Shown: piece by piece, positions 1 to 64,000 of the stretch
How positions within the stretch are numbered: the first letter of the stretch is position 1
How the letters are laid out: the number at the start of each line of letters is the position of its first letter
Sequence record: PQ657772.1
Reading direction: 5' to 3' (one strand)
Length of the DNA: 64,000 nt
The notes under the pieces: model-generated
Database searches by the model: none
Told to the model about the DNA's origin: nothing
The model's input: only the letters and a program-made list of their open reading frames with translations
Program-made: the position numbers and the translations under genes

Positions 1-140
1 TAACGCCTTTGTACTGTCTATATAAATTCAACTGCGTATATTGCCTTTGATCAAGAATTGATCAGAATTATACGCCTTATGCTAAATTGATCCAGTACTT
101 TTTGATCATTTATTGATCGATATTATATAGTTACATTTGT

Positions 141-209
141 GCACCCTATGGGTTAGTGACGTTCTCGTCTTGATGTAAGTATTATGCCAGTACTGGAGGA
201 TATTGTCAA
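141..209 (-). ncRNA. promoter-driven ORF-less two-hairpin element, copy A
   Basis: TTGACA(204-209)-17-CATAAT(181-186), then CATCAAGACGAGAACGTCACTAACCCATAGGGTGC; no RBS or ORF. Confidence 0.5.
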
Positions 210-213
210 TAGA

Positions 214-417
214 TTATTTTAATTTTTTTCTGTCATTGATTAATGCTTTCAGTACTATACTAATAACTTGCAATGATTCATCAATGACAATGAAATTATT
301 CTCTTTCATTAGATGATAGTTACCATTGATTGTATATTCTAACGAGTACTGTTTACGTTTAATTTTTGATAATGTTTCTATTTGTTTTTGTACTGATTTC
401 ATGCTAATCATTGTCAA
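214..417 (-). CDS. hypothetical protein
   Basis: 67-aa ORF; no clear RBS. Confidence 0.4.
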   Translation of the reverse strand: MTMISMKSVQKQIETLSKIKRKQYSLEYTINGNYHLMKENNFIVIDESLQVISIVLKALINDRKKLK

Positions 418-480
418 ACGTCCTGTAACGCATTCTAACGAGATAAACGGTTGAGTACTGGCATTGTATAGGGTAAATGA
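417..480. repeat. dispersed ACGCATTCTAACG-core repeat
   Basis: 417-436 identical to 3414-3433; core shared with 10203-10215. Confidence 0.6.
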
Positions 481-482
481 TT

Positions 483-512
483 ATAGCCCACCAGCGTTAA
501 CCAGTGGGCTAT
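483..512 (-). terminator. intrinsic terminator-like hairpin
   Basis: ATAGCCCAC...GTGGGCTAT inverted repeat just after a stop codon. Confidence 0.6.
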
Positions 513-516
513 AATA

Positions 517-660
517 TTACATCTTGCGGATAATCTTAACAGTATCTTTCACCGATTTACCGTTTTGCTGACATTGCTCGATCATCGCGTATTGTTCTGC
601 GGTCAGATCCTCGCCAGTTTTTGCCAGTACTGCGTCGATGAATGAATCCAGTGCGATCAT
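517..660 (-). CDS. early hypothetical protein (47 aa, MIALDSFIDAV...)
   Basis: hand-translated; GAGAG RBS; own promoter 705-732. Confidence 0.7.
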   Translation of the reverse strand: MIALDSFIDAVLAKTGEDLTAEQYAMIEQCQQNGKSVKDTVKIIRKM

Positions 661-750
661 TTTGTTTCTCTCTTAGGTTAAGTTAACTACTGTTTATAAA
701 ACTTATTATACAGTACTATCAAACGTTGTCAATAGTACTGGTAATATATT

Positions 751-954: not shown

Positions 955-1016
955 TGATAAAAGTTATTATGTCAGTACTATCAAACTATGTCAATAGTAC
1001 TGTGATAATATTTTTA
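955..1016 (-). promoter_or_regulatory. sigma70 promoter cassette, duplicated at 4349-4410
   Basis: TTGACA-17-CATAAT; 62 bp with 1 mismatch to 4349-4410. Confidence 0.8.
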
Positions 1017-3036: not shown

Positions 3037-3105
3037 TTCATATTCCTTAATTAGTGGGGAGAATCATTTCTCCCCTTCATGTAAAACATTATACGCGTTT
3101 AAAAA

Positions 3106-4318: not shown

Positions 4319-4407
4319 TTTAGTATTCCTTAAATTAATATGTTGTCTTGATAAAAGTTATTATGCCAGTACTATCAAACTATGTCAATAGTACTGTGAT
4401 AATATTT

Positions 4408-4551: not shown

Positions 4552-4637
4552 TTTAGTTTCCTTGTAGTGGGGAGAACCATTTTCTCCCCTTGATGTAATG
4601 TATTATACTTTATTCGATTTACTTTGCAAGTACTTTT

Positions 4638-6418: not shown

Positions 6419-6501
6419 TTGATTATCCTTAGTTACCAGGGGGAACCGCTCCCCTTGCGATGTAAAATATTATACAGTACTAAAAACTATTATCAAGTAC
6501 T

Positions 6502-7203: not shown

Positions 7204-7291
7204 TTTATTTTCCTCATTACCAGGGAGAACCATTTCTCCCTTTGATGTAAACCATTATACAGTACTGAAAACTAATTGCAAGTACTTTCTA

Positions 7292-8587: not shown

Positions 8588-8824
8588 TTATACTGCAATC
8601 GCGTCCAGGCTATAATAATAATAAGTGCCGTATTGGTGTACTTTATTACCTTTTATTTCAGTACTGAATGAATCCGAACGGTTTGCATATGATGTTAATT
8701 TAAAGTACTTTGATTTGCTGATACGTTGCCATACACCACAGATCCGCTGTAAGTAAGTAGTTTTATTCGTGGTAGTATCTTTTACGGTTTTAACTTCAGT
8801 CATATACATATTAGTCATTTTCAT
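8588..8824 (-). CDS. early hypothetical protein
   Basis: GGAG RBS; promoter 8871-8898. Confidence 0.8.
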   Translation of the reverse strand: MKMTNMYMTEVKTVKDTTTNKTTYLQRICGVWQRISKSKYFKLTSYANRSDSFSTEIKGNKVHQYGTYYYYSLDAIAV

Positions 8825-8905
8825 TACTCCAGGTTATAGGCGGGAAGAGTTCCCGCTCTCGATGTAAAACATTATACGCCTTTAAACATAGTTTGCAAGT
8901 ACTTT

Positions 8906-9172: not shown

Positions 9173-9258
9173 GCTGTTGCCCTTATCGTTGGTGTATGAA
9201 TAAAACACTATTATAAAGTACTATCGCAAAAAAATGATAGTACTTTAAATAAATTCTA

Positions 9259-9956: not shown

Positions 9957-10070
9957 CGTTTTAATCTCTCTTAATGTGTAGCGGGAAGTGTTCCCGCTCT
10001 CGATGTAAAACATTATACGCTTTTATCAGTACGGTGCAAGTACTTTCTACAAATACTTTTAAAATAGTTT

Positions 10071-10167
10071 TCTTTCTATATAGGAGTACTATTATTCAGT
10101 ACTGAATCAATCCAGGGGAACTATCTTTCTATATAGGAGTACTATTATTCAGTACTGAATCAATCCA
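10071..10167. repeat. perfect 44-bp direct repeat
   Basis: 10071-10114 = 10124-10167, 9-bp spacer; two AGTACT per unit. Confidence 0.95.
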
Positions 10168-10184
10168 CTAAATCATCCCTATAC

Positions 10185-10292
10185 CCCGTAAAACGGCCTC
10201 AGACGCATTCTAACGCATTAATACACATAAGCTATACATTTGCACCATTCCAATCATTCCAGGGCTTTACAGGCCGTTTAAACGCGTTAAAT
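10185..10292. repeat. dispersed ACGCATTCTAACG-core repeat with imperfect inverted ends
   Basis: AACGGCCT...AGGCCGTT ends; core shared with 428-440 and 5047-5061. Confidence 0.6.
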
Positions 10293-10319
10293 TATTTTCA
10301 ATTATTTTGTTTTTAGGTA

Positions 10320-10400
10320 TTGACTTGATCCTGAAAAAGCGTATAATTACTACATAGACGCGAGAAAGCGGATACCCCAGGGGGTGGGAAGATCCGTCCA
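10320..10400 (+). ncRNA. promoter-driven ORF-less element, copy F
   Basis: TTGACT-16-TATAAT; GCGAGAAAGC hairpin; CCCCAGGGGGTGG; GATCCGTC shared with copy C. Confidence 0.45.
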
Positions 10401-10421
10401 AAATTCAAGATATAAAAAAAG

Positions 10422-10501
10422 GATACACTCCCGCACCCTAGCAGGTAAACGCACTTTCTCAGTACTGAAATATAGTACCATAGTCCGGCCCAGGATAGCA
10501 A
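10422..10501 (-). ncRNA. promoter-driven ORF-less element, copy G (convergent with F)
   Basis: TTGCTA-18-TACTAT; GTACTGAGAAAGTGC hairpin; AGGGTGCGGGAGTGTATC shared with copy E. Confidence 0.4.
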
Positions 10502-10535
10502 GCAAATTAATTAAAACTTTTTTGCTTCCAGGGTA

Positions 10536-10612
10536 TTGCTTTATTTTTTCAGTACTGTATAATAGTTCCATCAAGTCGAGAAAGACTCAAGCCCACCGGG
10601 TGCATAGTTACG
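10536..10612 (+). ncRNA. promoter-driven ORF-less element, copy H
   Basis: TTGCTT-16-TATAAT; CATCAAGTCGAGAAAGACTCAAGCCCACCGGGTGC. Confidence 0.55.
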
Positions 10613-10786
10613 CCCAAAATTCAGTACTGAAAAAATTTTTAAAAATATCCGGCCAGGCCGTTGACATTGCCCCCAGTTTATAAGATAATGATTCCAGATT
10701 CAGAAAAATCTAACACCAGATACTGCGGGGAAACTATCCCCACGCGGTAGGGGAACTATTGGAAAAAACAAAATAAAATTTTGATT

Positions 10787-10898
10787 TAGCCGTCTATACT
10801 TCCAGACGTGTAACCATCTAGCCGTTTAGCCGTCCAAACGTCTAGCCATCCAGCCATCCAGAAATCTAGCCGTTTAGCCGTTTAGATGGATAGCCATC
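10787..10898. repeat. degenerate 8-bp-period tandem array (YAGCCRTY)
   Basis: units at 10787, 10811, 10819, 10827, 10843, 10851, 10867, 10875, 10891, all in 8-bp register. Confidence 0.85.
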
Positions 10899-11300
10899 TT
10901 TACTTCCAGACTTCTGGAGGGCTAGACATATCTACGCCCAAAATCCATCCAGGGTAACTACACCCAAAATCCGTCAGTACTATACCATAGATCTATCTTT
11001 TGAAAGGGAGTATTCAGTACTGCCATCATAGCCCTCACTATGTTACCCTAGGAGGATGAAGACCATCATGTAGTACTGAATACTGTTAGAGGGAATCCAC
11101 CAGCTTGTGCTGGTGGCATAATGCTTTAGATTAAAATCAGTACTGACACCATTCTGTTAATATCAGTACTGTTATTACGATTTTCATATGAGGTTCAAAA
11201 AGATGTACCACCACAGGAGGAACTATCTTTTCTGTACTGTCTCACGACAGGAGGTAGAGTAAATGAATTGTTCGCAGCAACTCATCACCCTATGTAGAAC

Positions 11301-11328
11301 ATTATACAGTACTGAATCATAAAGTCAA
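11301..11328 (-). promoter_or_regulatory. sigma70 promoter firing into ORF-free DNA
   Basis: TTGACT-16-TATAAT with CAGTACTG abutting the -10 box. Confidence 0.7.
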
Positions 11329-11801
11329 TAACTTTCTTTCATCTTTCAGTACTGATATTCTTGAGAACTACCCGACTACAAACATCATTATATCCCACAA
11401 ATCATAAACGTCCCAACGTAAATTTCAACTTTCGAAGATCCAACTTTTATTTCATAGGTACTCCAAAATTTTTAGGATCGAGATTTAGGATGGAGTACTA
11501 ACCAACTTTTTGCTGGAGCCTCAAGGGGTAATGGAATTTTACCCCGAAGGGTAAAGGGGTAATTGAAATTAAGGTGAAAGTAATAATTCAGTACTAATCA
11601 TTGCGTGATTACTTTTGATTACATTTGATGTAATTTGCAAAATGGAAAAGGAGCTTGGAAACTACAAAGTACGGCAGACTTCCTCTGCCTACTTAGTGGG
11701 ATATCGCCACCTTCAGTACTGAATACTTTTAGGGCAGTACTGCTACGTTCTTGATTAAACGTGCACATTCCTGTACTCTATTACACTCTGGTACTCAATA
11801 C

Positions 11802-16896: not shown

Positions 16897-18045
16897 ATGT
16901 TACCTTTTGTTAGAATGTTTGATTATGGGAATGAAGCACCTACCAACTCTGGGCGTTTTAAAATATATTCCAGTGATTCTATGTATCTTCATGATACTTA
17001 TACTGACAAGTTGTATGCATCTTCTGCGACGAATTGGGGTACTGGTACAGGTGTAGCATCGAGTAAATTTATTCTTTGTGCGGAGAATGTTAAACGAGTT
17101 CTATTGGAAGATAACAGTAGTGATTGTCAATTGTATGAAGAGAAAGGTACTGGAAAAGTTTTTATCACTGGTAACACGAAGGCATTCACTGGTGTAACTG
17201 ATAGAAAAACTTTGTGGACGGACTGTACTACGTGGATAACATCAAGTGGTATTAATGTTTCTGATATAAAATACATGAGTAGTTTTTATGATATGAAGGT
17301 GAATTTGATAACAAACGATGGTACATTGTATTGTTGTGGAGCTAACAATATATCGAACATATCATCATTTGGTGATGGCACAAACATTAATTCTTTTAAC
17401 ACATTCAAAAGAGTAGATACTATAACTTCGGTTAAAAAGGCAGTTGGTAACATTTATTTGCGAGAAGATAATACTTTATGGGGTTGTGGTTTTAACTATT
17501 ACTACCAGTTGGGCACGGGTAATCAAACTTCTATTACTGGGGTGACGATGATTTCTTCGGATGTTATAGATTTTAATGTAAGTTATCAGAGTACATTTTT
17601 TATCAAATCGGATAATAATTTGTACGCTTGTGGTAAACAGTTCGGTGCACAATATGGGAACGAATTTGGTACAGGTGGTACTTCCTCTTCTACTGATATA
17701 CAATATAAAACTCCCACATTATTGAGTGCAGGTGTTTATAGTTTATATACTTGTGTTGGTAACATGGCATCACATATAGTTAAAGGTGATGAAGTACTTT
17801 ATGCATCTGGAAGCAACTCGTCTGGTCAATTAGGTGTTGGTAATAATAATAATCAGTACTCCTATACTCCTTCATATACTTCGTTTAATACCTCTTGTAA
17901 TTTGGTACGCACCCCATCTGGTTCACTTATACTTACTGATACTGGAAAATTATATTATTGTGGCCTTGCAATAGTAGTAATGGGTGGTATTTCTGGACAG
18001 AACGTTCTTAATTATACAGAAGTCGATATGTCATTTTTGCAGTAA
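16897..18045 (+). CDS. RCC1/BLIP-II-like beta-propeller protein 1/13
   Basis: MLPFVRMFDYGN tag; LWGCGFNYYYQLGTG and LYASGSNSSGQLGVG repeats. Confidence 0.85.
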   Translation: MLPFVRMFDYGNEAPTNSGRFKIYSSDSMYLHDTYTDKLYASSATNWGTGTGVASSKFILCAENVKRVLLEDNSSDCQLYEEKGTGKVFITGNTKAFTGVTDRKTLWTDCTTWITSSGINVSDIKYMSSFYDMKVNLITNDGTLYCCGANNISNISSFGDGTNINSFNTFKRVDTITSVKKAVGNIYLREDNTLWGCGFNYYYQLGTGNQTSITGVTMISSDVIDFNVSYQSTFFIKSDNNLYACGKQFGAQYGNEFGTGGTSSSTDIQYKTPTLLSAGVYSLYTCVGNMASHIVKGDEVLYASGSNSSGQLGVGNNNNQYSYTPSYTSFNTSCNLVRTPSGSLILTDTGKLYYCGLAIVVMGGISGQNVLNYTEVDMSFLQ

Positions 18046-18053
18046 ATTAATAT

Positions 18054-18112
18054 GCCAGTACTTGATACTGGCTTTTTTGATTAAATATAGTATAATGAAT
18101 AAAGGAGGAAAT
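18054..18112 (+). repeat. terminator-promoter-RBS junction cassette
   Basis: GCCAGTA-CTTGA-TACTGGC + T-tract + TAAATATAGTATAATGAATAAAGGAGG. Confidence 0.85.
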
Positions 18113-19222
18113 ATGTTACCTTTTGTAAGAATGGTTAAGTACGGGAATATTGCACCAGTACCGAAAAAAATAAAGAAAGTTATAGCAGGATATGATAATT
18201 TATATGTACTATATGGTGATGGTTCGCTATATGGTTGTGGAATCAATAACTATCAACAGTTAAATATTAATGGAACTGCTACACAAAATAATTGGGTACT
18301 AATTACCAATGGTGTTAGTAATGCATGGGCTGGTGGATACAATATTTTATATTTGAAAGAAGATAAATTTATAATGCACGGAACTAATGTCTCATTAGGT
18401 TTAGGAAATACTACAATTCCATTAGGTGGAGTAGATGTAACTTCTTCATTCCCAGATATCTCTAATATTAAAATGATATCCATTGGTTTTGATTCAATGC
18501 ACTATGTTAGTGCTGATGGTACAACTGTATATGGAAGAGGTATGAACACAAATGGTTCTGTTGGTTCAGGTAGTACTTACTCACAGAGTACTTTCACTTC
18601 AGTACTGAATAATGGAACTAATCAGGTTATTGATATATTTGGTAACGTTAATAATACAGTGCTTCTAACATCGAATGGTGAGCTTCGAGCATGTGGGACA
18701 AGTGCTTATGGTTCTATAGGAAATGAAACTGGTAAGTGGACATCGTTTGGTTTAAAATTATCTGGCACTAAAATAATGGGTGGTAATGGGTATAGTACGC
18801 TTGCATATACAAATTCGGGAATGTACCACTCAGGGTGGCAGTTAAATGGGGAACTAGGAAATGGTTTAGATACTAACGTACAGGTATATCCATTTCAATT
18901 TAACTCTAAAACGATAGATAGCAAGATAGATAAAATTGCCAAATCATCATCTGGGTCATATGTTAACATGTACTCAACAACAGAAGGAAAGATATATACG
19001 ACAGGTTCGTTTGGTAAAAACGGGTCAACTACTGCATTGAATTTGTTCACCAATACATTAACACTTATAAATTACAATCCAGATACCGCCTCGTTGTATA
19101 CGTGCACAAACTTCAGTGTTGTGTATGATGGTAATGAAACTATTGCTGTAAGTGGTAGTCCTACATATGTACCAGGGGGCGTTGCCGCTAATAGATGGAC
19201 TACAATTCCATTACCCAAGTAA
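18113..19222 (+). CDS. RCC1-like beta-propeller protein 2/13
   Basis: start moved to MLPF; LYGCGINNYQQL and SGWQLNGELGNG repeats. Confidence 0.85.
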   Translation: MLPFVRMVKYGNIAPVPKKIKKVIAGYDNLYVLYGDGSLYGCGINNYQQLNINGTATQNNWVLITNGVSNAWAGGYNILYLKEDKFIMHGTNVSLGLGNTTIPLGGVDVTSSFPDISNIKMISIGFDSMHYVSADGTTVYGRGMNTNGSVGSGSTYSQSTFTSVLNNGTNQVIDIFGNVNNTVLLTSNGELRACGTSAYGSIGNETGKWTSFGLKLSGTKIMGGNGYSTLAYTNSGMYHSGWQLNGELGNGLDTNVQVYPFQFNSKTIDSKIDKIAKSSSGSYVNMYSTTEGKIYTTGSFGKNGSTTALNLFTNTLTLINYNPDTASLYTCTNFSVVYDGNETIAVSGSPTYVPGGVAANRWTTIPLPK

Positions 19223-19228
19223 TACTAT

Positions 19229-19293
19229 GCCAGTACTTGAGTACTGGCTTTTCTTTTTGATTAAATATAGTATAATGAATAAAGGAGGGAAAT
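19229..19293 (+). repeat. terminator-promoter-RBS junction cassette
   Basis: GCCAGTACT-TG-AGTACTGGC + T-tract + TAAATA-N3-TATAAT. Confidence 0.85.
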
Positions 19294-20415
19294 ATGTTAC
19301 CTTTTGTTAGAATGTTTGATTATGGAAATGAAGTACCTGATCCTAGTTCGGGATTTCGAATAATAAGTACAGGAGACGCATTACTATTAATTACTAAGAG
19401 TGGTGATTTGTGGGTGCGTGGTTATAACCGTTATGGCAAGTTAGGTATAGGTAATAACACCACTACCTATGTACTTGATTGGACGAAGGTTAGAAGTGAT
19501 GTGAAGTTTGCGTGTGGTAGTGGATTGGTAACAGTTATCTTTACTAAGGATAATCGTATATTGTACTGTGGTGACAAATGGTTTGAAACGGGTGGTGTTG
19601 GTAGTGCACAGATTTTCACATGGACAGATGTTACGCATCAATTTGGGGTAGTAGATTTGAGTACTGTAAGGGATATGAAAATATCTTATTACGCGATTGG
19701 GTTAGTTACTACTAATAATCAATTATACGCTAAGGGATTTGATAATAACCTATCATTTGGTGGGGTTACTAATAAGGCGACTGCTGTGTTTATTGCGAAT
19801 AATGTACAAGAGTTGTATACGAGTTTAGTTAGTACTATCTACGTTGATACAAGTGGTATATTACATCGTTGTGGCATGAGTGATAACGGTTCGTTGGGTA
19901 ATAATGGTAGTTTAACTTCGTATCTAAGTTATTCACAGCCTGGTATGACGATTAAGGACATTGGAATGATGACTACGAACACTGGGTTATTATATACTGA
20001 TTCTAGTGCACGAACGAGATATTTTATTGCTGGACAGAACTTGAATAAACAGATGGGTAATGCGGCGGCTGCGAGTGCCATTACGAGTACTTACACAGAG
20101 CTTTCTGGTAGTGTTGATAAGTTTTCTTCTTTATGGGAGAATGATGGGATATTGATGACATTTGCTGTGGGTAAGAACACTAATCAGTTATTTTATGCTG
20201 GGACGAATACTTTTCATGCGAGTGGTGGTGAATCTTCATATGCGGATACATATGAGTTAGTTCCGATGGTGTTTAATGACATACAGGAAGTGTTATGTGC
20301 ACAGCGTTTATCGGTGGTACATGATTCTACGAAGTGGTATTACTGTGGTGATGCTAATTCAATGTATGGTTTACCGGACGTAAGTACTTTTACTGAGTTA
20401 CCGTTGCCCTTTTAA
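19294..20415 (+). CDS. RCC1-like beta-propeller protein 3/13
   Basis: tag; LWVRGYNRYGKLGIG. Confidence 0.85.
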   Translation: MLPFVRMFDYGNEVPDPSSGFRIISTGDALLLITKSGDLWVRGYNRYGKLGIGNNTTTYVLDWTKVRSDVKFACGSGLVTVIFTKDNRILYCGDKWFETGGVGSAQIFTWTDVTHQFGVVDLSTVRDMKISYYAIGLVTTNNQLYAKGFDNNLSFGGVTNKATAVFIANNVQELYTSLVSTIYVDTSGILHRCGMSDNGSLGNNGSLTSYLSYSQPGMTIKDIGMMTTNTGLLYTDSSARTRYFIAGQNLNKQMGNAAAASAITSTYTELSGSVDKFSSLWENDGILMTFAVGKNTNQLFYAGTNTFHASGGESSYADTYELVPMVFNDIQEVLCAQRLSVVHDSTKWYYCGDANSMYGLPDVSTFTELPLPF

Positions 20416-20421
20416 TAATAG

Positions 20422-20488
20422 GTCAGTACTGAAATATGTACTGGTATTTTTTGTAAATACTGTATGATTTAATTACGGAGATTTTATT
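20422..20488 (+). repeat. variant terminator-promoter junction
   Basis: CAGTAC..GTACTG hairpin; TAAATActgTATGAT; GGAG RBS. Confidence 0.75.
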
Positions 20489-21670
20489 ATGTTACCTTTT
20501 GTTAGAATGTTTGATTATGGGAACGTCGTTGAGCCACCTGTGGGTACACGTTATACCTGTAGTGACTATAGTGCGACTTATAGTTTAATAAAGGATGGTG
20601 TGTTATATGTATCTGGGATGAATAACTATTATCAGTTAGGTAATAACACTAACGTAACACGTTACAACGAGTGGTTAAAAGTTCCAGAGACTGATAGTGT
20701 TAAGTTTTGTAGTACTGGTTATAGTCAGACAATGTATCTGACTAACAATGGTAGGATAATGATAGCAGGTGAAGATCCTACTTCCAGTGCGACGGCGGTA
20801 AGTGTAAAGGTTTGGACGGATATAACTTCTAGATTTCGTGCAGTTGATACTAAAAAGATTGTTTATATTTCAATAGAACGTTATGGTGTAATGATGATCA
20901 TGGAAGATGGTTCAGTATGGGCGTGTGGTGTTGATAATACTGGTTGGAGTGGACAAGGGAGTAAGACTGTTGGTTTCTTTACTTTCAGACAAATATACAC
21001 CGGAAGTGCAGGAAGTGCAGTTGCTTGTACTGCTGGTACTGGCACTTCGAGGATTCTATTAGTTGATGGTACAATATTGTCCTCTGGTACTAATACATAT
21101 CATCAATGTAATGCTAGTACTGATCTGGCTGTTCTAACATACACTGAATCATTCCCTGGGGTTGATCCTTCATTGATATATCAAGTCAAGATGTGTAATA
21201 ACAACTGTATTATATTCTTGAGTGATAAGAGATATTATGGTACTGGTTGGGGGAGTTTTGGTGCTTTGGGTGATGGTGATATTTCGGGTTCGAATAATAA
21301 ATTCTATGCTGGTACATTGTCAGTTGCTCCTAAAAACATGCGTGCTTATATGTCGTATCTATGTAGTTCTGCTGGGGATTCTAGTATGTACATAGGCGAT
21401 GATAATTTCATATACACCTGCGGTTATCGTGGGAGGAACTTAATAAATGCCACTACAGATATTGGGACGTTCACGAAATGCATTCAAAGTGCACAAGGAT
21501 ACAAGAATGGACTTATATATAGTGGGAATTATTGTGCTGTAGTTTTTGATCCAGATTTGGGTTCAGGAATGACATATGCGGTTTCATCACCAAAAGTGAA
21601 TGCACCAGCACCACAGGCGAGTGTTCCAACATTGGGTATGAGTTCGTTACAAGCTATTATTTTACCATAA
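20489..21670 (+). CDS. RCC1-like beta-propeller protein 4/13
   Basis: tag; LYVSGMNNYYQLGN. Confidence 0.85.
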   Translation: MLPFVRMFDYGNVVEPPVGTRYTCSDYSATYSLIKDGVLYVSGMNNYYQLGNNTNVTRYNEWLKVPETDSVKFCSTGYSQTMYLTNNGRIMIAGEDPTSSATAVSVKVWTDITSRFRAVDTKKIVYISIERYGVMMIMEDGSVWACGVDNTGWSGQGSKTVGFFTFRQIYTGSAGSAVACTAGTGTSRILLVDGTILSSGTNTYHQCNASTDLAVLTYTESFPGVDPSLIYQVKMCNNNCIIFLSDKRYYGTGWGSFGALGDGDISGSNNKFYAGTLSVAPKNMRAYMSYLCSSAGDSSMYIGDDNFIYTCGYRGRNLINATTDIGTFTKCIQSAQGYKNGLIYSGNYCAVVFDPDLGSGMTYAVSSPKVNAPAPQASVPTLGMSSLQAIILP

Positions 21671-21675
21671 CATTA

Positions 21676-21745
21676 TACCAGTACTGAAATACGTACTGGT
21701 ATTTTTTTGTAAATACATTATAATTATTATATGGAGATTTTAGTT
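21676..21745 (+). repeat. variant terminator-promoter junction
   Basis: TACCAGTAC..GTACTGGTA; TAAATAcatTATAAT. Confidence 0.75.
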
Positions 21746-22876
21746 ATGTTACCTTTTGTTAGAATGTTTGATTATGGGAATACAGTGGCTGCTCCCACTG
21801 GTATAAAGGATTTCCAAGCAAATGGAAGCCACTGTATGGCACTAACATATAGTGGTGAGATGTGGGCTTATGGTACAAGTACAAGTGGATCAATGGGAAC
21901 CGGATTCACGGTGGGTGCTGCTGATAAGGGTTGGTACAAGTCTAACATTAGTAATGTTAAATCATTCAGTTCTAATATGCAGACTAGCACAGTGGCTTTG
22001 ACAAATGATGATAGAGTGCTAGTTTGTGGCTCAACTAGATTTGACAAATTCAGTACTCCAGATATTGCATCATCTAACCTTGATTGGTTGGATGTTACTG
22101 ATCATATTCCACAGGAAGTTATTGATGCTGGGATGAAGCAAGTTATTAACCACGCATATTATGTTGCCATTTTTACTGAAAACAATCTATTATATAGTGT
22201 GGCATTATCTTTGGGTAATACTAGTACTATAATAGATAGAACATGGCGAAGAAATACATTTGGTGATATACAAGTTGAACGTGTTGTTTCGTTGACACAA
22301 ACCCCAAGTGGTCCTTTGTGTATAGTTCAAGATGCAGACGGATACCAGTATGGTATTGGATATAATGGTAATAAGATTATTGATAATACTTCCACTAATT
22401 CATATTCTGTATATACCAAAATGGGTACACTTCCTTACAATGAATTTGCCATATCGAATAGCGGGAAATTCAGTTCAGCGGTATTATCAGACGGGAGAAG
22501 TGTTTATAGTGGTACATTTCCAAAGTCATTCAATAATAGTTTTGGTTCATTTTTGAAAGTTGGTGCGGTATCAGATACTGTGTTTGGTTTAGATGCAAAA
22601 AATATGCGTGGTCAATATGGTCAAAATCAATTACCAATTGCGGCGGCTGATAACAATGCAAGTAATGGCGTTGTTAACCTTCGTAATGTTCCAGCGGGAA
22701 CACAAACGAAAGACATTCGATTTATATGCGGAAATGATGTAAAGAACGTTTATATCATATACACAAATGAAGACGGCATTAGCTCATTTTATGGATTGGG
22801 ACCAAACTTTGATCAAAATTCCTCAGCATATGCACAATTCGTCAAAGTGGATTTGCCAGGGGCATTATTAAATTAA
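21746..22876 (+). CDS. RCC1-like beta-propeller protein 5/13
   Basis: start moved to MLPF; MWAYGTSTSGSMGTG. Confidence 0.8.
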   Translation: MLPFVRMFDYGNTVAAPTGIKDFQANGSHCMALTYSGEMWAYGTSTSGSMGTGFTVGAADKGWYKSNISNVKSFSSNMQTSTVALTNDDRVLVCGSTRFDKFSTPDIASSNLDWLDVTDHIPQEVIDAGMKQVINHAYYVAIFTENNLLYSVALSLGNTSTIIDRTWRRNTFGDIQVERVVSLTQTPSGPLCIVQDADGYQYGIGYNGNKIIDNTSTNSYSVYTKMGTLPYNEFAISNSGKFSSAVLSDGRSVYSGTFPKSFNNSFGSFLKVGAVSDTVFGLDAKNMRGQYGQNQLPIAAADNNASNGVVNLRNVPAGTQTKDIRFICGNDVKNVYIIYTNEDGISSFYGLGPNFDQNSSAYAQFVKVDLPGALLN

Positions 22877-22886
22877 GGAGAGAAAT

Positions 22887-23996: not shown

Positions 23997-24002
23997 CATA
24001 AT

Positions 24003-24066
24003 GCCAGTAATCTGTACTGGCTTTTCTTTTTTGTTAAATATAGTATAATGAATAAAGGAGGAATAT
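24003..24066 (+). repeat. terminator-promoter-RBS junction cassette
   Basis: GCCAGTA..TACTGGC; TAAATA-N3-TATAAT. Confidence 0.85.
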
Positions 24067-25246: not shown

Positions 25247-25250
25247 ACAC

Positions 25251-25316
25251 AATGCCAGTACTCAAGTACTGGCATTCTTTTTGATTAAATATAGTATAAT
25301 GAATAAAGGAGGAAAT
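25251..25316 (+). repeat. terminator-promoter-RBS junction cassette
   Basis: AATGCCAGTACT-CA-AGTACTGGCATT; TAAATA-N3-TATAAT. Confidence 0.85.
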
Positions 25317-26471: not shown

Positions 26472-26477
26472 AATTAA

Positions 26478-26547
26478 AATGCCAGTACTTGAGTACTGGC
26501 ATTTCTTTTTTTGATTAAATATAGTATAATGAATAAAGGAGGAAAAT
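26478..26547 (+). repeat. terminator-promoter-RBS junction cassette
   Basis: same architecture as the other junctions. Confidence 0.85.
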
Positions 26548-27738: not shown

Positions 27739-27745
27739 CAATAAT

Positions 27746-27812
27746 GCCAGTACTTTGTACTGGCTTTTATTTTTTTTTGATTAAATATAGTATAATGAAT
27801 AAAGGAGGAAAT
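27746..27812 (+). repeat. terminator-promoter-RBS junction cassette
   Basis: same architecture as the other junctions. Confidence 0.85.
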
Positions 27813-29000: not shown

Positions 29001-29051
29001 TACTGGCTTTTCTTTTTGATTAAATATAGTATAATGAATAAAGGAGGAAAT
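28989..29051 (+). repeat. terminator-promoter-RBS junction cassette
   Basis: same architecture as the other junctions. Confidence 0.85.
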
Positions 29052-30401: not shown

Positions 30402-30407
30402 TATAGT

Positions 30408-30471
30408 GCCAGTACAGAGTACTGGCTTTTCTTTTTGATTAAATATAGTATAAAGAATAAAGGAGGGAATT
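30408..30471 (+). repeat. terminator-promoter-RBS junction cassette
   Basis: GCCAGTAC..GTACTGGC; TAAATAtagTATAAA. Confidence 0.8.
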
Positions 30472-33494: not shown

Positions 33495-33525
33495 AATCCA
33501 GTACTATTATAGTACTGGATTTTTT
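33495..33525. terminator. bidirectional terminator
   Basis: AATCCAGTACT-ATTAT-AGTACTGGATT between convergent blocks. Confidence 0.8.
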
Positions 33526-39544: not shown

Positions 39545-39620
39545 GACAATTCCTCGATTGTGGGGATGAGAAGTTCATCCCCTTGATAAACATTATACAG
39601 TACTGAATGAGTTTGTCAAC

Positions 39621-42762: not shown

Positions 42763-44256
42763 TTATTTTTTATCCTTTCCAACACCACGGTCGTACTCTT
42801 TGAATGAGTTATCAAGTGTAGTTAGTGCATACTCATATGCTTCTGGTGATTCAATGTCAACATCATCTGCACCATTTACTAAATCAGCCCAAGCCTTTTG
42901 AAGTTTACGAGCATTGTTACCAACATTATCTTTAATCCAACTAATATTTTTGTTGATACTTTTACTATCAGCACCTGCTTTTTTACCAATCTCGGATATC
43001 CACATCATTAACTTTTGAAGTTCATGAATTGATTTATCAGTCATTTCAAGATGTTCTTCTTCCATACCGTCAGAATCAGATGAACCAACGTCAATTCCAT
43101 GTTTAGCTAATAGTTTACCAAGTTCAAAGAATGCAGCTTCAGCAGGGAAGTCATAACCTTTGTCTTTATAGTTATTCCATGCACTATCAAACTCGTCAAC
43201 AAAACGGTTAGCATAATCTGGATTTTTAACTAATGCTTTATATACTGCCATTGCATGTTCAAAACCTTCTTTATCTGACCCAAACTCTTCCATCTCAGGA
43301 CGATGAATGTATCCATCCATATCAACGGTATCAGGTAGATCTTCTTGCTCAGGCTCAACATCTTTCTGTTCAACTGCACCTTCTTCATCTTTACGTAGTA
43401 GATATCCATCAGGTGTCACTTTCTCACCATGTTCTGCTTCATACTTTTTCATAGTGTTGAATGCAGCATCCATAGCTGTTACGAAGCGACTTTTCTCACC
43501 TTGTACATAAGATTTAAGTGCACTGTTAACTGCATCTGATACGAGCTTAACCTTATCATCTTTACCTTCTAAACGGTTTTCAAGTTTAGCCAGTACATTC
43601 TTGACTTGCTGGGCATTAGCACGGTCTGCTTTACCAATACTATCAAAAGTTTTAAGAATACCATCAAGACTTGCTTCACCCTGTTCAGGTTCTTTGTAAT
43701 CTTCTTTGTGTGTACCTTCAAGTGCACGCATGATAGTACTGAATACTTCAGTGGGTTCAGTGCTCTTATTACCTTTCATTGCATCAAGTACAGCTTGTGC
43801 TTTACCTTTGAGTTCTTCTTTAGGAACTGCCTGTAGTGCTTTGACAATACCCTGAATCAACTGTGGTTTGTTAGCAAAGATCTTACCTAAGTTATCAGAT
43901 AACTCTTTAACAGGGTTAGCAGCTTTAGGTGCTTCTGCTTTTGGTTCTTCTTTAGGAACTGCTTGTTCTTTCTCAGCACGTTCCATATCAGCAAGGCGTT
44001 GTTTCTGTGTTGCGTTAAGAAGACCTAATGAGTTAACATAACGTAGCTTTTCTAGCTCAGTCATGTTCTCAGTACTCTTAACTTCACCTGCTTCTGCGTT
44101 TGCCTTACCAGCTAAACCTGTCCCTTGATTACGTGAACCACGTGAACCTTGTCCTGCTTGATAACTATTTTTGCGACGATTTCGGTCGGCCCATTTATCC
44201 GAGTGTTGTACTAGTCCACCATTACGATGTTTCATATCCCCATTATCTTGTGGCAT
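42763..44256 (-). CDS. 497-aa charged helical protein (possible internal virion protein)
   Basis: GAGGA RBS; K/E/D-rich; N-half homologous to 45621-46004. Confidence 0.8.
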   Translation of the reverse strand: MPQDNGDMKHRNGGLVQHSDKWADRNRRKNSYQAGQGSRGSRNQGTGLAGKANAEAGEVKSTENMTELEKLRYVNSLGLLNATQKQRLADMERAEKEQAVPKEEPKAEAPKAANPVKELSDNLGKIFANKPQLIQGIVKALQAVPKEELKGKAQAVLDAMKGNKSTEPTEVFSTIMRALEGTHKEDYKEPEQGEASLDGILKTFDSIGKADRANAQQVKNVLAKLENRLEGKDDKVKLVSDAVNSALKSYVQGEKSRFVTAMDAAFNTMKKYEAEHGEKVTPDGYLLRKDEEGAVEQKDVEPEQEDLPDTVDMDGYIHRPEMEEFGSDKEGFEHAMAVYKALVKNPDYANRFVDEFDSAWNNYKDKGYDFPAEAAFFELGKLLAKHGIDVGSSDSDGMEEEHLEMTDKSIHELQKLMMWISEIGKKAGADSKSINKNISWIKDNVGNNARKLQKAWADLVNGADDVDIESPEAYEYALTTLDNSFKEYDRGVGKDKK

Positions 44257-50908: not shown

Positions 50909-50966
50909 GTTTTATATCCTCAAGTTTAAGTGTTAAGTTTCAGACTACAAGAACCATTATACAGTA

Positions 50967-51209
50967 CTACAAACGTTTGTCAACAGGTTTTTCTTCAATA
51001 AGCATAAGATAACTGAAGACGAATAGTAATACAGATGCCATATCAATAACCGTAAAGCTCACGGGAATGATAATAGACACTAGAACGAGTGCCACGTTTA
51101 GCAAGAATACAGTAGTGATATCCACCAGCTTTCGTTTAGTGGCTACTGCTACTAGTGTAGGGTAGAACATAAACAATAATGCAACTACAAAACTCAATAC
51201 TAGATACAT
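50967..51209 (-). CDS. T4 Imm-like membrane protein
   Basis: FYPTLVAV..TVFLLNV; 80 aa. Confidence 0.55.
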   Translation of the reverse strand: MYLVLSFVVALLFMFYPTLVAVATKRKLVDITTVFLLNVALVLVSIIIPVSFTVIDMASVLLFVFSYLMLIEEKPVDKRL

Positions 51210-54824: not shown

Positions 54825-54948
54825 AGTTAATTCCTCATTTAATTTAAAAGGGCGGGAACGCAGTGACGAGTACGATTATGCTGTCTTTCCTTTCACTGCA
54901 TTCCCTTTGATATAAACATTATACAGTACTGATATCTTATGTCAAGTA

Positions 54949-57338: not shown

Positions 57339-58307
57339 TTAAAAATCTTCGAACTCATAACCTTTTGTCTTAACCATCTTACGCAGTCGTTCCATTGCTT
57401 CAGAGTACTTACGGTGCAATGAAGAACGAGCAGTCATGACCTTACCCTTCTCATCTTCAAAACCACTCTCAATGATTTCTCGTAGCGTTTCTGGTTCAGA
57501 ATAAGAACCAATACCATGTACACGTTCAATCAATTCACGGTCTTTGGCAGATAGGTTACTCATCATTTCTGCAATACTTTGTACCAGTGGGGTACTGACA
57601 GTTTCTACGCCTAAGTTGTAATCAGGTTCAACTGAAGTAACAATGTCAGATAATGTACTTTCTGAATCATTACTCATTTTCATATTCAATGCTACATAAG
57701 TGTTATTGTAAGTTAGACAATTCTTAACGTGTTGAATCTCAATACCAGTCTCTTTTGACACCATCTCAGGAGTTGGGTATTTACCATGTTTCCTTTGATA
57801 CTCTTCTACACAACGTTTCACATAAATGTTATTAACACTCATATAACGTGGGAAATGCACTAGATAATTAGCATCTGCACTTTCGTTATAGATTGTCATG
57901 TACACAGTTGTTGTTGCATATGTAATGAACTTGACATTTTTGGTAGTGTCGAACGTATGAATTGCTCGCATTAAACCTTCAACACCATAAGAAATCTTAT
58001 CTTCAAATGGGATGAAACATGTACACTTACGTGCAACACTTACTACCATTGGATAGTTGTAGCGAACCAAAAGGTCAATGTTCTTTTCAACGTCAATACC
58101 ATCACGCACTGCTTGGATTAACATTTCATTCGTTAGACCTTTAGGTCGGGTTAAGCTGATACCAGTTTTTGGCTTCTCAAACTTGTGACCGTCATGTTCT
58201 TCTTCTTCTTCGACGGAATCAAGAGCCTCTAATACGTTGACTTCTTCACTAGCAAAACACTCATCCAGTACTTCTTCAGAAATTGCATTTAAATCAAGCT
58301 TTTTCAC
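57339..58307 (-). CDS. sigma70-family RNA polymerase sigma factor
   Basis: region 2 EDKISYGVEGLMRAIHTFD..KFITYAT; region 3 PTPEMVSKETG; region 4 LSAKDRELI..TLREI; GTG start, AGGAG RBS. Confidence 0.9.
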   Translation of the reverse strand: MKKLDLNAISEEVLDECFASEEVNVLEALDSVEEEEEHDGHKFEKPKTGISLTRPKGLTNEMLIQAVRDGIDVEKNIDLLVRYNYPMVVSVARKCTCFIPFEDKISYGVEGLMRAIHTFDTTKNVKFITYATTTVYMTIYNESADANYLVHFPRYMSVNNIYVKRCVEEYQRKHGKYPTPEMVSKETGIEIQHVKNCLTYNNTYVALNMKMSNDSESTLSDIVTSVEPDYNLGVETVSTPLVQSIAEMMSNLSAKDRELIERVHGIGSYSEPETLREIIESGFEDEKGKVMTARSSLHRKYSEAMERLRKMVKTKGYEFEDF

Positions 58308-60744: not shown

Positions 60745-61202
60745 TATTTCAGTCCCCATGCCTTTTTAATAGCATCCACTGCGTTCTGGTCTACGACTTC
60801 CTGTTTAGTAGCACTGGTTTGTAGTTTATCAATTACATAGTTCTTAGCATCTTTTTCAATCATAAACTTACCATCAACTAAACACCCAAATACTTTAGAG
60901 TTACGTGCTGGATATGTCCCGATTTCATCAAGAGTACGAACTTTCTTATCAACTACAATTGCTTTGATGTAACCAGTTTCCAGTACTGTAGTGATGACAG
61001 TCATTTCGATTGCAATTGGTGACTCTTCCCAGAATGCAATCCACTTGGTGAAGCTGCGGTCCGGTGAATCTTTTGTTGGCTTCAGTTTAATTGCACTGTT
61101 GAAAATGTACTGCTTGAATCCATCTTCAACCACTTCACTGATACTTAGGTAACCTTCGCGTTCTTCTGCGTTGCGTTTGAATTGAGTAGCTAATACGTCC
61201 AT
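60744..61202 (-). CDS. hypothetical protein
   Basis: GAGGA RBS. Confidence 0.8.
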   Translation of the reverse strand: MDVLATQFKRNAEEREGYLSISEVVEDGFKQYIFNSAIKLKPTKDSPDRSFTKWIAFWEESPIAIEMTVITTVLETGYIKAIVVDKKVRTLDEIGTYPARNSKVFGCLVDGKFMIEKDAKNYVIDKLQTSATKQEVVDQNAVDAIKKAWGLK

Positions 61203-61255
61203 CGTTAAATCCTCTTGTCAGTTATTGCGGTACGAAGCTATTATACTGCCATTTA

Positions 61256-61699
61256 CTATTTGGAGTCAACACATTTCAACAAGTATTTTTCTATGTATCT
61301 TATATGTGATGGTGGTAACAGTAAGTTTTCGTATCTAACCCTGTACACACTACAATCACCTAGATGAAAGTGACTGGTAGGATACAAGTCAGTTCTAATA
61401 CTAACACGTTTACGATTATCAGTAAAGTTAATTAATGATTTTGGATTGTTATTAGCATGAGTTCTTACAAAGTATTCAATTTCATTGAGTGCTTTTTCGT
61501 CGTATACATACTTGTCAAACACACCTAGTGTAAAGTACCTTGGATGGTACATATATGAGAATAACAATGCAGGAATATACTTCTTTATCCCTTCGTGTTT
61601 TGCAATAGCTGAAGCATATGCAAAATGTGATGCATCAGAGAAGATGTTAAGAAAAATGAAATATGACACTAATAAACCTAGAATCAGCAAAAGTGTCAT
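61256..61699 (-). CDS. membrane-anchored hypothetical protein
   Basis: N-terminal TM; GAGG RBS. Confidence 0.75.
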   Translation of the reverse strand: MTLLLILGLLVSYFIFLNIFSDASHFAYASAIAKHEGIKKYIPALLFSYMYHPRYFTLGVFDKYVYDEKALNEIEYFVRTHANNNPKSLINFTDNRKRVSIRTDLYPTSHFHLGDCSVYRVRYENLLLPPSHIRYIEKYLLKCVDSK

Positions 61700-62160
61700 T
61701 CAAAACCTCTGTATTTTTCATATACTTCAACACATTCCATGATCTTGTCATCATCGGTCATGTCATAACCCTGAAGAAATTCTTCTTTATCAACCTTAGC
61801 AGCCATCATGTCATCATCCGAGATCCTCGAATCATAGAATGTGTACATATCTTTATAGTACTGCTTGTTGTGCTGTTCATCCTTAACCTTAGCATACCCA
61901 GCACAAAACGATGGCGATTTGACTACATTCCATTTATGCTTTTTGATAGGCTTATCATTAGCATGTTTTTCACGGTATTGCTGGCGGTAACGTTCACGCA
62001 TCTCAGGCATGTATTCTTCAGCAGTACGTTTTGGTTGGGCTTTCCCTGTTCCAATCGTCTTGATTGTTTGACGCTGGTCTTCCGCATGTACTGGTGCAAC
62101 AAAGCAGGAAGTACTGAATACAACAGCAGTGATTACTAGAAAGTGTTTAAACATAATCAA
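61696..62160 (-). CDS. exported protein
   Basis: signal peptide ending PVHA; GGAGG RBS. Confidence 0.75.
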   Translation of the reverse strand: MIMFKHFLVITAVVFSTSCFVAPVHAEDQRQTIKTIGTGKAQPKRTAEEYMPEMRERYRQQYREKHANDKPIKKHKWNVVKSPSFCAGYAKVKDEQHNKQYYKDMYTFYDSRISDDDMMAAKVDKEEFLQGYDMTDDDKIMECVEVYEKYRGFE

Positions 62161-62384
62161 ACCTCTTTTACAATAATGTCGATTTGCACAGGAATAGCAA
62201 TCTCACTGTTGCATGAATAAACATCGGCACAGTACTCAATATCTAGTACTTCATAGTATTTTTCAAAGCCACAGATTGTAAGATTCAACGTAGCACCAAT
62301 AGCTGGCAATACGGGAAAGGATAAAAATGCAATTTTAGAATTAAATTCTTCATTAATATCTTGATATACAGTGGCAGTAATCAT
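62157..62384 (-). CDS. hypothetical protein
   Basis: GGAG RBS; ATGA overlap. Confidence 0.75.
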   Translation of the reverse strand: MITATVYQDINEEFNSKIAFLSFPVLPAIGATLNLTICGFEKYYEVLDIEYCADVYSCNSEIAIPVQIDIIVKEV

Positions 62385-62965
62385 AATGGTAACTCCTGAA
62401 GTGGTTTAATAATACTCAGTACTGGGTGATTTTCAATCATTGGTCGCCCTGGTACACCTGTTAGCACAACTGGAATCGAACTAATGTCTTTTACATAGTT
62501 GAATCCCTCAAATGTGAATTCTTGCTTTTTCTCATTATACAATACCCACAGAATAACGTCAGCTTTTTTCTGTATATTTTTTAACTGTCGAGTACTAACA
62601 CATGGTCCAAAGTCGGTCCACGATTTGTACTTGATACCTTTCACTTCAATTCTTAAGTTGTTTACTTTGATATCACATTCCCCATCACGTCCATCACTTT
62701 GGAACGCTGGATCGATGTTAAGTGCAATACCTGAATAGTTTTCAATTTCATTAAAAAGTACAAATGAAGCATGTTCACATACCATACCAACAAAATGACT
62801 GTGAGCGTGATTAAACCCATACGGCGATTTACTTGCAGGTGCAAGAATTTTATATCGTTCGGATTTCTCAATTGCTTTAGCCATAAAAGAATCAGCTTCA
62901 TCTTTGTATAGCTTAACAGTCATTTTACCATTTTTCAGTACTAAACGTTTTTCTACAACACTCAT
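62381..62965 (-). CDS. PD-(D/E)XK nuclease-like protein
   Basis: GMVCE..DGECDIKVNNLRIEVKG; AGGGG RBS; promoter 62993-63021. Confidence 0.65.
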   Translation of the reverse strand: MSVVEKRLVLKNGKMTVKLYKDEADSFMAKAIEKSERYKILAPASKSPYGFNHAHSHFVGMVCEHASFVLFNEIENYSGIALNIDPAFQSDGRDGECDIKVNNLRIEVKGIKYKSWTDFGPCVSTRQLKNIQKKADVILWVLYNEKKQEFTFEGFNYVKDISSIPVVLTGVPGRPMIENHPVLSIIKPLQELPL

Positions 62966-63044
62966 AAAATCCCCTTATTGATATTCCATTTAAGTATACG
63001 TCAAAAACACAACTCAGTCAAGGTGCTTTTTTACCTATCTAGAA

Positions 63045-63059
63045 TAAATACGTTATAAT
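63045..63059 (+). promoter_or_regulatory. TAAATA-N3-TATAAT promoter
   Basis: same motif as upstream of the propeller genes. Confidence 0.65.
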
Positions 63060-63081
63060 AATTATACCAATGGAGGGATGA

Positions 63082-64000
63082 ATGTCAAGATCGATTGCTG
63101 CTGCTGGACAATATAAGTTCGGTGAATGTGGATATGTAGTCGATGGTGCAATTCTCAACGATGGGACTAAACTCAAAAATGTTCGAATCTATCGTCAGAG
63201 AAGCCATAGATTATATGATTTACTTGATCCTGTAAGTAATGTAATTTATCGTAAAGTACAAATTACAACAAAGGATATACAAGGATATCAATTAAACTAC
63301 AACAAAACTAATGACCAAATCCTAAGTGAAATAAGAAAGAACTCTTTTTTCGTAAGAGGATACTCAGATGCTAAACTTGAATCAGATCCTACTGGGTTTG
63401 TTTATAAGTTTCTTTTGCACAAAACAATTCTAGGTAGTTCACAAACACTATATAATATGTACACCCCTGAATGCGGGATTATAGATAGAGATATAGACAA
63501 CATCCTTATGTTCCCAACGTTCGTAGGTGATGATTTGGTAGGTGGTCGCCTATTCAACGCAGGTTCAGCCATTGATACAACTGGAATGCGTATTACCGTT
63601 ATACTTCCTGACGGAACCGAGTACTTCACAACTGAAATAATTGATGATGTTTTTAGTATTCCAGTTGATCCAATTACTCAATCCGGTAAAGGAACCATCA
63701 TACTCACTTCTGACATATATAATACCAAAACTATTGAATTTGATATACTAGAAAGCGGCGAAGATATTGACTTCGTTACTTCAGTACTTCTATCTCAGTT
63801 TGAGTACACGTCCGATGGTATGTACGTGGCAACTGTACCAGCTACTGTGCATGAACGTGGTGAGTATCTTGCTCTACAAGCATACAGTGGTGATTTATTC
63901 CAAATTGGAGTAGACCTCATTGTAGATCCTAGCGGTAATATTACTGTGTACCAAACTGATGATGCTCCAATCTCATTGAGTATTATTGGTAAAACCTTAC
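63082..64000 (+). CDS. probable virion structural protein (truncated by window end)
   Basis: hand-translated open frame MSRSIAAAGQYKFG...; GGAGG RBS; beta-rich acidic C-part; no stop in window. Confidence 0.7.
   Translation, partial: MSRSIAAAGQYKFGECGYVVDGAILNDGTKLKNVRIYRQRSHRLYDLLDPVSNVIYRKVQITTKDIQGYQLNYNKTNDQILSEIRKNSFFVRGYSDAKLESDPTGFVYKFLLHKTILGSSQTLYNMYTPECGIIDRDIDNILMFPTFVGDDLVGGRLFNAGSAIDTTGMRITVILPDGTEYFTTEIIDDVFSIPVDPITQSGKGTIILTSDIYNTKTIEFDILESGEDIDFVTSVLLSQFEYTSDGMYVATVPATVHERGEYLALQAYSGDLFQIGVDLIVDPSGNITVYQTDDAPISLSIIGKTL

Follow-up and report, generated by a model that had tools for sequence, protein, structure and literature searches.

AGTACT, a highly iterated palindrome of RaK2-like jumbo phages and candidate site of a symmetric DNA reader

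The palindrome AGTACT, which is the ScaI site and contains the RsaI site GTAC as its core, is the commonest hexamer in a 64,000-nucleotide stretch of sequence record PQ657772.1 (hereafter the window). We count 253 copies, compared with 22.2 ± 4.6 expected (dinucleotide-preserving shuffles; shuffle maximum 34). The window is part of an Asteriusvirus jumbo myovirus of Escherichia coli from the PBECO4/121Q group; an 8-kb sample shares 99.4% identity with Escherichia phage EC.P1, and gene coordinates agree from base 1. We propose, with about even confidence, that AGTACT is the density-selected site of a twofold-symmetric reader of double-stranded DNA, and that in the jumbo clade it is also an early-promoter operator.

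Excess, motif and selection

An earlier, sequence-only reading of the window had listed ten AGTACT positions in the first kilobase, all of which are exact, and had described the palindrome as frequent throughout and present in all reading frames. This description holds, with coding copies distributed 86/35/58 over the three frames. The density is ∼7 per kb in the small early-type genes at 1–17 kb and ∼2.8 per kb in the remaining window; non-coding DNA, at 8.2 per kb, is richer in sites than coding DNA, at 3.25 per kb. Longer versions of the site are in excess as well: CAGTACTG has 57 window copies (0.95 expected) and TTCAGTACTGAA has 8 (0.01 expected). The sequence-only reading had named two outcomes that would speak against it, loss of the excess upon codon or dinucleotide correction and its confinement to duplicated cassettes. 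Neither is found, because the excess outlasts the shuffles as well as two codon permutations (the coding sequences hold 179 copies, compared with 53, maximum 72, when synonymous codons are permuted within genes, and with 27 when whole codons are permuted), and because the 30-nt contexts around the site are mostly unique (215 distinct contexts, 198 of them singletons). Ser-Thr dipeptides are themselves in excess in the window coding sequences (170 versus 102 expected from composition), and 86 of the 170 use the AGTACT spelling, compared with 26 predicted from codon usage; across every enriched lineage this spelling accounts for 51–66% of Ser-Thr dipeptides. The dipeptide excess and the spelling bias together indicate pressure on synonymous choice and on protein sequence.

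Other palindromes have the opposite fate. In the window, which has a GC content of 33–40%, 25 palindromic hexamers are without any copy, and in PBECO4 (348 kb, L003–L009) 23 of the 64 are absent, with 3–46 copies of each expected (CCATGG, 0 versus 46; TGGCCA, 0 versus 43). The missing hexamers almost all contain at least four G/C. Since other 6-bp palindromes are so heavily purged, AGTACT stands out as a selected exception.

The extended consensus is TTnC-AGTACT-GnAA. The flanks mirror each other: C precedes the core (−1) and G follows it (+1) in 45–47% of sites, and T at −3/−4 pairs with A at +3/+4. G is disfavoured at −1, where ∼71% of sites have a pyrimidine, and no information above background is left more than 4 bp from the core. 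Variants with one mismatch are enriched 1.3–2.6-fold, most strongly at the outer positions, as expected of weak or decaying binding sites; AGGACT/AGTCCT is the only depleted class. Site spacing is near-random given local density, except for an excess at 20–25 bp, and we found no regular spacing other than that of the promoter pairs described below. A dispersed repeat or mobile element, such as a repetitive extragenic palindrome or a miniature inverted-repeat transposable element, was rejected, as there is no longer shared unit beyond ±4 bp and 198 contexts are singletons. The fullest motif and the densest cluster lie close together:

10094–10107 and again 10147–10160, no strand assigned: perfect 14-bp palindrome ATTCAGTACTGAAT, the fullest form of the motif in the sequence
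10014–11618, no strand assigned: non-coding stretch in which the sites cluster most densely (16, at 10 per kb)

No Rfam match was found in the dense non-coding cluster at 10.0–11.6 kb. The same stretch contains ∼9 head-to-tail 8-bp units at 10791–10942 (CGTCTAGC, CATCCAGC, CGTTTAGC and similar), an iteron-like array that is possibly an origin or another protein-binding array.

In the complete genome of PBECO4, too, no hexamer is commoner than AGTACT, which has 891 copies and an observed/expected ratio of 8.9; all 10-kb bins are enriched, with peaks at early-gene regions. Counts in samples of other genomes are as follows:

RaK2 (Klebsiella), 50-kb sample: 114 AGTACT observed, 11.3 expected
GAP32 (Cronobacter), 50-kb sample: 114 observed, 14.2 expected
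XbC2 (Xanthomonas), 50-kb sample: 113 observed, 16.7 expected
PA5oct (Pseudomonas), 50-kb sample: 3 observed, 14.4 expected
Atu_ph07 (Agrobacterium), 25-kb sample: 3 observed, 2.9 expected
SCTP-2 (Salicola), 25-kb sample: 12 observed, 5.5 expected
T4 (E. coli), 50-kb sample: 12 observed, 8.8 expected
E. coli K-12 chromosome, 50-kb sample: 3 observed, 5.1 expected

This distribution indicates that the strong trait arose inside the enterobacterial RaK2-like clade. The T4 and E. coli chromosome samples are not enriched, which argues against a general host or coliphage effect. Phage DNA carries 2.6–4 sites per kb and the E. coli sample ∼0.06 per kb, which makes the phage ∼40- to 65-fold richer than the host. 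XbC2 (L133, OP292654.1 160001–210000), a phage with Xanthomonas vesicatoria as its reported host, is a congener of the Cronobacter phage GAP32 and has kept the full AGTACT signature. Either its host jump is recent, or the signature is independent of an enterobacterial host.

Purifying selection on the sites is visible when related sequences are compared. Between the window and PBECO4 (47.9 kb aligned, 87.6% identity), 79.3% of the window AGTACT sites are intact, compared with 60.4% of control hexamers ≤30 bp away and 55.5% of all other hexamers. The differences run in both directions (42 sites are window-only, 32 are PBECO4-only), showing that sites turn over. In 39 ortholog pairs of PBECO4 and RaK2 (63% amino-acid identity, 51% third-position identity), AGTACT is retained in 41.5% of cases versus 15.1% for other hexamers, and in 77% versus 32% where the encoded residues are conserved. 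Some of this agreement would arise in any case, because both genomes spell over half of Ser-Thr as AGTACT; the data therefore show strong ongoing pressure without separating site-by-site constraint from density pressure.

Promoters and terminators

Roughly an eighth of the AGTACT copies lie in promoters and terminators, at placements that had been described earlier and that we find present. About 50 small minus-strand genes occupy 1–16.8 kb of the window, downstream of strong sigma70-type promoters, and AGTACT enters the promoters of this early block in two arrangements. In the first, AGTACT-(A)-TTGACA-N9-AGTACT-G-TATAAT, the two copies have a spacing of 20–22 bp; the first borders the −35 hexamer on its upstream side and the second abuts the −10 box. 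In the second, AAAA-AGTAC(T)TGCAA-N17-TATAAT, a single copy overlaps the −35 hexamer. The word AGTACTNTAWAAT (AGTACT-N-TAWAAT) has 11 copies in the window, with 0.11 expected. Promoter features are the following:

705–739, minus strand: sigma70-type early promoter, AGTACT-A-TTGACA-N9-AGTACT-G-TATAAT, with sites 734–739 and 712–717 22 bp apart
966–1001, minus strand: paired-site early promoter, sites 996–1001 and 974–979
4360–4395, minus strand: paired-site early promoter, sites 4390–4395 and 4368–4373
6469–6501, minus strand: paired-site promoter in the 20-bp register seen in RaK2, sites 6496–6501 and 6476–6481, with AGTACTGTATAAT at 6469–6481
7254–7286, minus strand: paired-site promoter in the 20-bp register, AGTAC-TTGCAA-N9-AGTACT-G-TATAAT, sites 7281–7286 and 7261–7266
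9210–9244, minus strand: paired-site promoter, sites 9239–9244 and 9217–9222
8898–8903, minus strand: example of the single-site class, site overlapping the −35 hexamer; further members at 2294, 4629, 7536, 8338 and 9579
39592–39619, minus strand: TTGACA-N10-AGTACT-G-TATAAT promoter outside the early block
50956–50983, minus strand: TTGACA-N10-AGTACT-G-TATAAT promoter outside the early block
54918–54945, minus strand: TTGACA-N10-AGTACT-G-TATAAT promoter outside the early block

The early-type region of RaK2 contains the paired arrangement ∼13 times in 11 kb, in a strict 20-bp register, from which we conclude that the promoter use of AGTACT is conserved between genera. As in an operator, the promoter copies hold a fixed position relative to the −35 and −10 boxes that is conserved in relatives; they account for only ∼12% of sites.

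Nearly every early promoter is followed, ∼10 nt past the −10 box and before the ribosome-binding site, by a conserved GGGGA-loop-TCCCC leader hairpin (e.g. GGGGAGAAAAACTTCTCCCC; minus-strand examples at 1227–1322, 1665–1746, 3037–3105 and 4552–4637). RaK2 promoters have GGGGA at the same position. A sigma70-family protein is encoded at 57339–58307 (minus strand); it matches Pfam regions 2 and 3, and region 4, which reads the −35 box, is unmatched at E≤0.001. Its PBECO4 homologue is annotated as RNA polymerase sigma factor.

In terminator-type stems, two copies of the palindrome face each other:

19229–19248, plus strand: stem GCC-AGTACT-TG-AGTACT-GGC with a T-run behind it, downstream of an RCC1-like gene
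25254–25273 and 26481–26500: stems GCC-AGTACT-NN-AGTACT-GGC of the same design as 19229–19248
33497–33519, no strand assigned: stem CC-AGTACT-ATTAT-AGTACT-GG with a T-run behind it, where two genes converge

The RCC1-like array at 16.9–33.5 kb consists of 14 tandem beta-propeller paralogues (16897–33490, plus strand), most of which are followed by an AGTACT-stem terminator and then by a near-identical TTGATTAAATATAGTATAATGAATAAAGGAG promoter and ribosome-binding-site cassette. The remaining window contains small genes without known function. The sole large gene of that part (42763–44256, minus strand, 497 amino acids) probably encodes a member matching the STAND-type NTPase and AAA ATPase domains in Pfam, and could be a defence or counter-defence gene.

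A second lineage and the identity of the reader

We scanned viral contigs for close CAGTACTG pairs and then counted AGTACT per locus. The truly enriched loci form two groups, further RaK2-like jumbo contigs and a large family of 25–35-kb contigs with a GC content of 42–44% and 3.5–5.6 AGTACT per kb (46 sites versus 3.4 expected in L059). The latter represent ∼33-kb siphovirus-type elements widespread in Leclercia, a host of ∼55% GC (L130 1–20400, L131 1–20000, L059, L060, L110 and ∼25 more loci). They occur as prophages, with AGTACT sites ending at the prophage-host junction, and diverged family members (24–50% amino-acid identity) are likewise enriched. The elements encode a large serine recombinase, a gpA-type terminase, a lambda-type portal, a capsid-protease fusion, a tape measure, a J-like fibre, a T4-type lysozyme, and GIY-YIG and HNH nucleases; despite this full virion module, no repressor or replication genes are recognisable among the scanned proteins. 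Their AGTACT sites lie mainly inside structural genes, in all frames, and spell 62–66% of Ser-Thr dipeptides. The extended motif of the jumbo phages recurs here unchanged, with C at −1 2.9-fold over background, G at −1 at 0.3-fold, and T favoured at −3/−4. We rejected the idea that the small phage is a hitch-hiker on jumbo-phage transcription, as small phages have no jumbo-type early or late promoter motifs.

An intergenic pair in these elements, C-AGTACT-GG-N8-CC-AGTACT-G (8807–8836 in both L131 and L130), forms a perfect 9-bp inverted repeat with the spacing of a LexA box (CTG-N10-CAG), the single pair of this kind in the Leclercia phage. The LexA box is CTGT-N8-ACAG (TACTG-N10-CAGTA). As an explanation of the palindrome itself we rejected it, since the half-sites point outward and overlap, and the window has no pairs at the 18-bp spacing that a LexA box requires.

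In the mechanism that we favor, a twofold-symmetric, sequence-specific reader of double-stranded DNA, most simply a dimeric DNA-binding protein, would bind the TTTCAGTACTGAAA duplex, and selection would keep as many AGTACT copies as coding permits. We read such a reader from the symmetry of core and flanks, the synonymous saturation, the conservation above control hexamers and the enrichment of weak variants. Its genome-wide role may be to tag or coat phage DNA, or the sites may titrate it; because phage DNA is far richer in AGTACT than host DNA, the reader would be concentrated on the phage. In the jumbo clade the site would be built into early promoters at the two fixed positions, and two dimers across the −35 edge and the spacer would exclude RNA polymerase. 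From this exclusion we infer a promoter function in the shut-off or repression, or in the timing, of early transcription.

Several observations weigh against this proposal. With only ∼12% of sites in promoters, an operator role cannot account for the bulk, and the near-random spacing gives no sign of an ordered nucleoprotein array. Among the 111 window proteins, Pfam searches found no DNA-binding domain other than regions 2 and 3 of the sigma70-type factor. No plausible reader gene common to the jumbo phages and the Leclercia family was detected by blastp, by profile hidden Markov models of every protein cluster or by phmmer down to 35-amino-acid open reading frames; the genes that the two lineages do share are a T4-type lysozyme, an HNH nuclease (in GAP32, not in PBECO4) and one small open reading frame without known function (L125). 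We know of no E. coli protein of TTnC-AGTACT-GnAA specificity. That XbC2 has the trait is evidence against a host reader confined to enterobacteria, unless this phage moved to Xanthomonas only recently.

The analogy to the cyanobacterial palindrome HIP1 and the conclusion that a selected, DNA-level excess implies a symmetric reader stand from the sequence-only reading. Its further suggestion, a phage-encoded protein such as a methylase, a packaging factor or a global regulator, fares less well. A phage-encoded reader was not borne out, as the Leclercia family has the same extended motif but no plausible shared reader gene; we hold it to be rather less likely than not. A packaging factor is unlikely because the jumbo and Leclercia lineages use different terminases. 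A global regulator fits the fixed promoter register, which covers only about one-eighth of sites. A reader that is host-encoded or otherwise shared, be it a protein conserved among enterobacteria or a small one that evolves too fast for homology searches to detect, is a tenable option somewhat short of an even chance. We lean slightly toward a reader that is not jumbo-specific, because the extended motif recurs in a phage family that is unrelated and has no candidate gene in common with the jumbo phages; the Xanthomonas phage XbC2, and the fact that no E. coli protein of matching specificity is known, pull the other way. It is conceivable, if rather unlikely, that these two unrelated enterobacterial phage lineages converged on the site of a single conserved reader and each saturated its genome with it; neither lineage obviously encodes such a reader, which would most simply be a DNA-binding protein of the host.

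The one E. coli protein known to have a site with this core is SlmA, whose site GTGAGTACTCAC is a 12-bp palindrome with an AGTACT centre and needs G1, T2, a purine at position 3, A4 and G5 (PMC3020112). SlmA was rejected as the reader: the phage motif has a pyrimidine at the purine-requiring position in ∼71% of sites, and among the 253 cores GTRAGYRCTYAC has no exact match and one one-mismatch copy, compared with 1.8 expected. A comparative jumbo-phage review gave no lead, and methylome papers that mention AGTACT proved irrelevant.

A HIP1-type, methylation-linked palindrome is the strongest rival. Here, a methyltransferase or base modifier would target AGTACT or GTAC, and methylation-dependent repair or selection would create and maintain the sites. 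HIP1 has been linked to methyltransferases with specificity for its core (PMC4390886), one-off variants of AGTACT are commonest at the outer positions as with HIP1, and 891 AGTACT sites persist in a genome from which other palindromes have been purged, perhaps because these sites are protected. The jumbo phages do encode two methylases, a PF05869 Dam-family enzyme conserved across the enriched jumbo clade and a PF00145 C5 (cytosine) methylase. The latter is probably the CpG methylase reported for RaK2 (PMC3622015) and is irrelevant because AGTACT contains no CpG. The Dam-family enzyme, which is not known to be specific for AGTACT, is a poor candidate for the reader: it is absent from the Leclercia phage, which is enriched and yet has no detectable methyltransferase, and PF05869 enzymes are also frequent in phages of Lactococcus, Staphylococcus and Acinetobacter that are not known for the motif. 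No AGTACT-specific methylase or endonuclease is recognisable by sequence in the jumbo phages. Decay of 5-methylcytosine hotspots would leave a C-to-T excess among lost sites, which is not seen (4 of 42), and a very-short-patch-type repair drive predicts a depleted neighbour class where the neighbour variants are in fact enriched. The methylase option thus has no positive support, and a HIP1-kind mechanism appears improbable to us.

A site for a type IIA topoisomerase (host gyrase, topoisomerase IV or a phage T4-type topoisomerase II) would explain the geometry, A-GTAC-T being twofold symmetric with a 4-nt stagger. Symmetry and the 4-bp core may match the way these enzymes cut, the jumbo phages encode a T4-type topoisomerase II, and strong gyrase sites are important for phage Mu (PMC6379681). 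The E. coli gyrase motif is, however, ∼130 bp long, degenerate and periodic rather than a sharp hexamer (PMC6379681), the small phage has no topoisomerase gene among its annotated proteins, and other coliphages with the same host enzymes are not enriched. We consider this rival very improbable.

An RNA-level signal, AGUACU on either strand acting for example in processing or in the pairing of nearby copies, could account for the site pairs that form terminator-like hairpin stems and for the 9-bp inverted repeat in the Leclercia phage. It sits poorly with flank preferences that are symmetric on DNA and with sites that are densest at non-transcribed promoter positions, nor does an RNA signal need a palindrome; we give it very little credence.

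The idea that AGTACT has no function and is a by-product of mutation bias, of codon or codon-pair usage or of cassette amplification can draw on AGT and ACT being common codons (34% of Ser and 45% of Thr codons in the window) and on the tRNA-Ser and tRNA-Thr reported for RaK2 itself (PMC3622015), but is largely refuted by the present data and hardly credible, given an excess that outlasts codon permutation in all frames and peaks in non-coding DNA, 215 distinct contexts, conservation above control hexamers, and no excess in the host chromosome or T4.

Comparison with known systems

We found no mention of AGTACT in RaK2/PBECO4-type phages in the literature searched, and papers on their promoters are silent on it. 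If the convergent-reader account is true, AGTACT would be a host-read, genome-wide tag or sponge that concentrates or titrates a host protein on phage DNA and, in jumbo phages, times early transcription; it would also be the first reported viral example of a highly iterated palindrome. The function of the cyanobacterial palindromes is unsettled after three decades of work. AGTACT is a signal of this kind in coliphages that can be cultured and infect a model host. Its consensus is sharp and spans 14 bp, its positions in promoters are fixed, it is clearly under selection, and a second lineage carries it independently, so that who reads an iterated palindrome, and why a genome is saturated with it, become directly testable questions. 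The answer bears on early-transcription timing or on the distinction of self from host DNA in RaK2/121Q jumbo phages, which are used in phage-therapy studies.

Several known systems resemble AGTACT in part. With Chi, DNA uptake sequences and the FtsK-orienting polar sequences (KOPS) it shares a short word at high density, also in genes, selected for a DNA-reading machine; those words are asymmetric and strand-oriented, whereas AGTACT is palindromic with symmetric flanks. Under restriction-site avoidance, phages purge 6-bp palindromes, as this one does, but its ScaI site does the opposite and lies ∼9-fold over expectation. Like the early-promoter operators of other phages (lambda OR, the T4 MotA box), AGTACT is short and keeps a set distance from the −35 and −10 boxes, with copies about two helical turns apart in an arrangement conserved between genera; unlike paired operators, only about one-eighth of its copies lie in promoters, and the others, hundreds per genome, lie in genes and terminator stems. 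The SlmA site has the same central six bases and is a palindrome read by a dimeric TetR-family enterobacterial protein (PMC3020112), but the phage motif favours C or a pyrimidine where SlmA needs a purine.

The closest parallel is HIP1 (GCGATCGC), a many-fold over-represented cyanobacterial palindrome of coding and non-coding DNA that is selected and whose function has long been unclear (PMC5861425, PMC4390886). AGTACT is likewise short, palindromic, many-fold over-represented after composition correction, dispersed over the genome in independent contexts, selected and maintained across relatives, and its one-off variants are biased to the outer positions. It is not HIP1 proper, being AGTACT rather than GCGATCGC and residing in an enterobacterial phage rather than a cyanobacterial genome. 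The two differ further in that AGTACT is AT-rich and fills phage genomes instead of cellular chromosomes, its host chromosome is not enriched, its spacing is near-random where HIP1 is reported to be quasi-periodic, no cognate methyltransferase was found for it, and it occupies fixed promoter positions. It is this combination of a different sequence, a viral setting, the lack of a cognate methylase and integration into promoters that sets AGTACT apart from HIP1.

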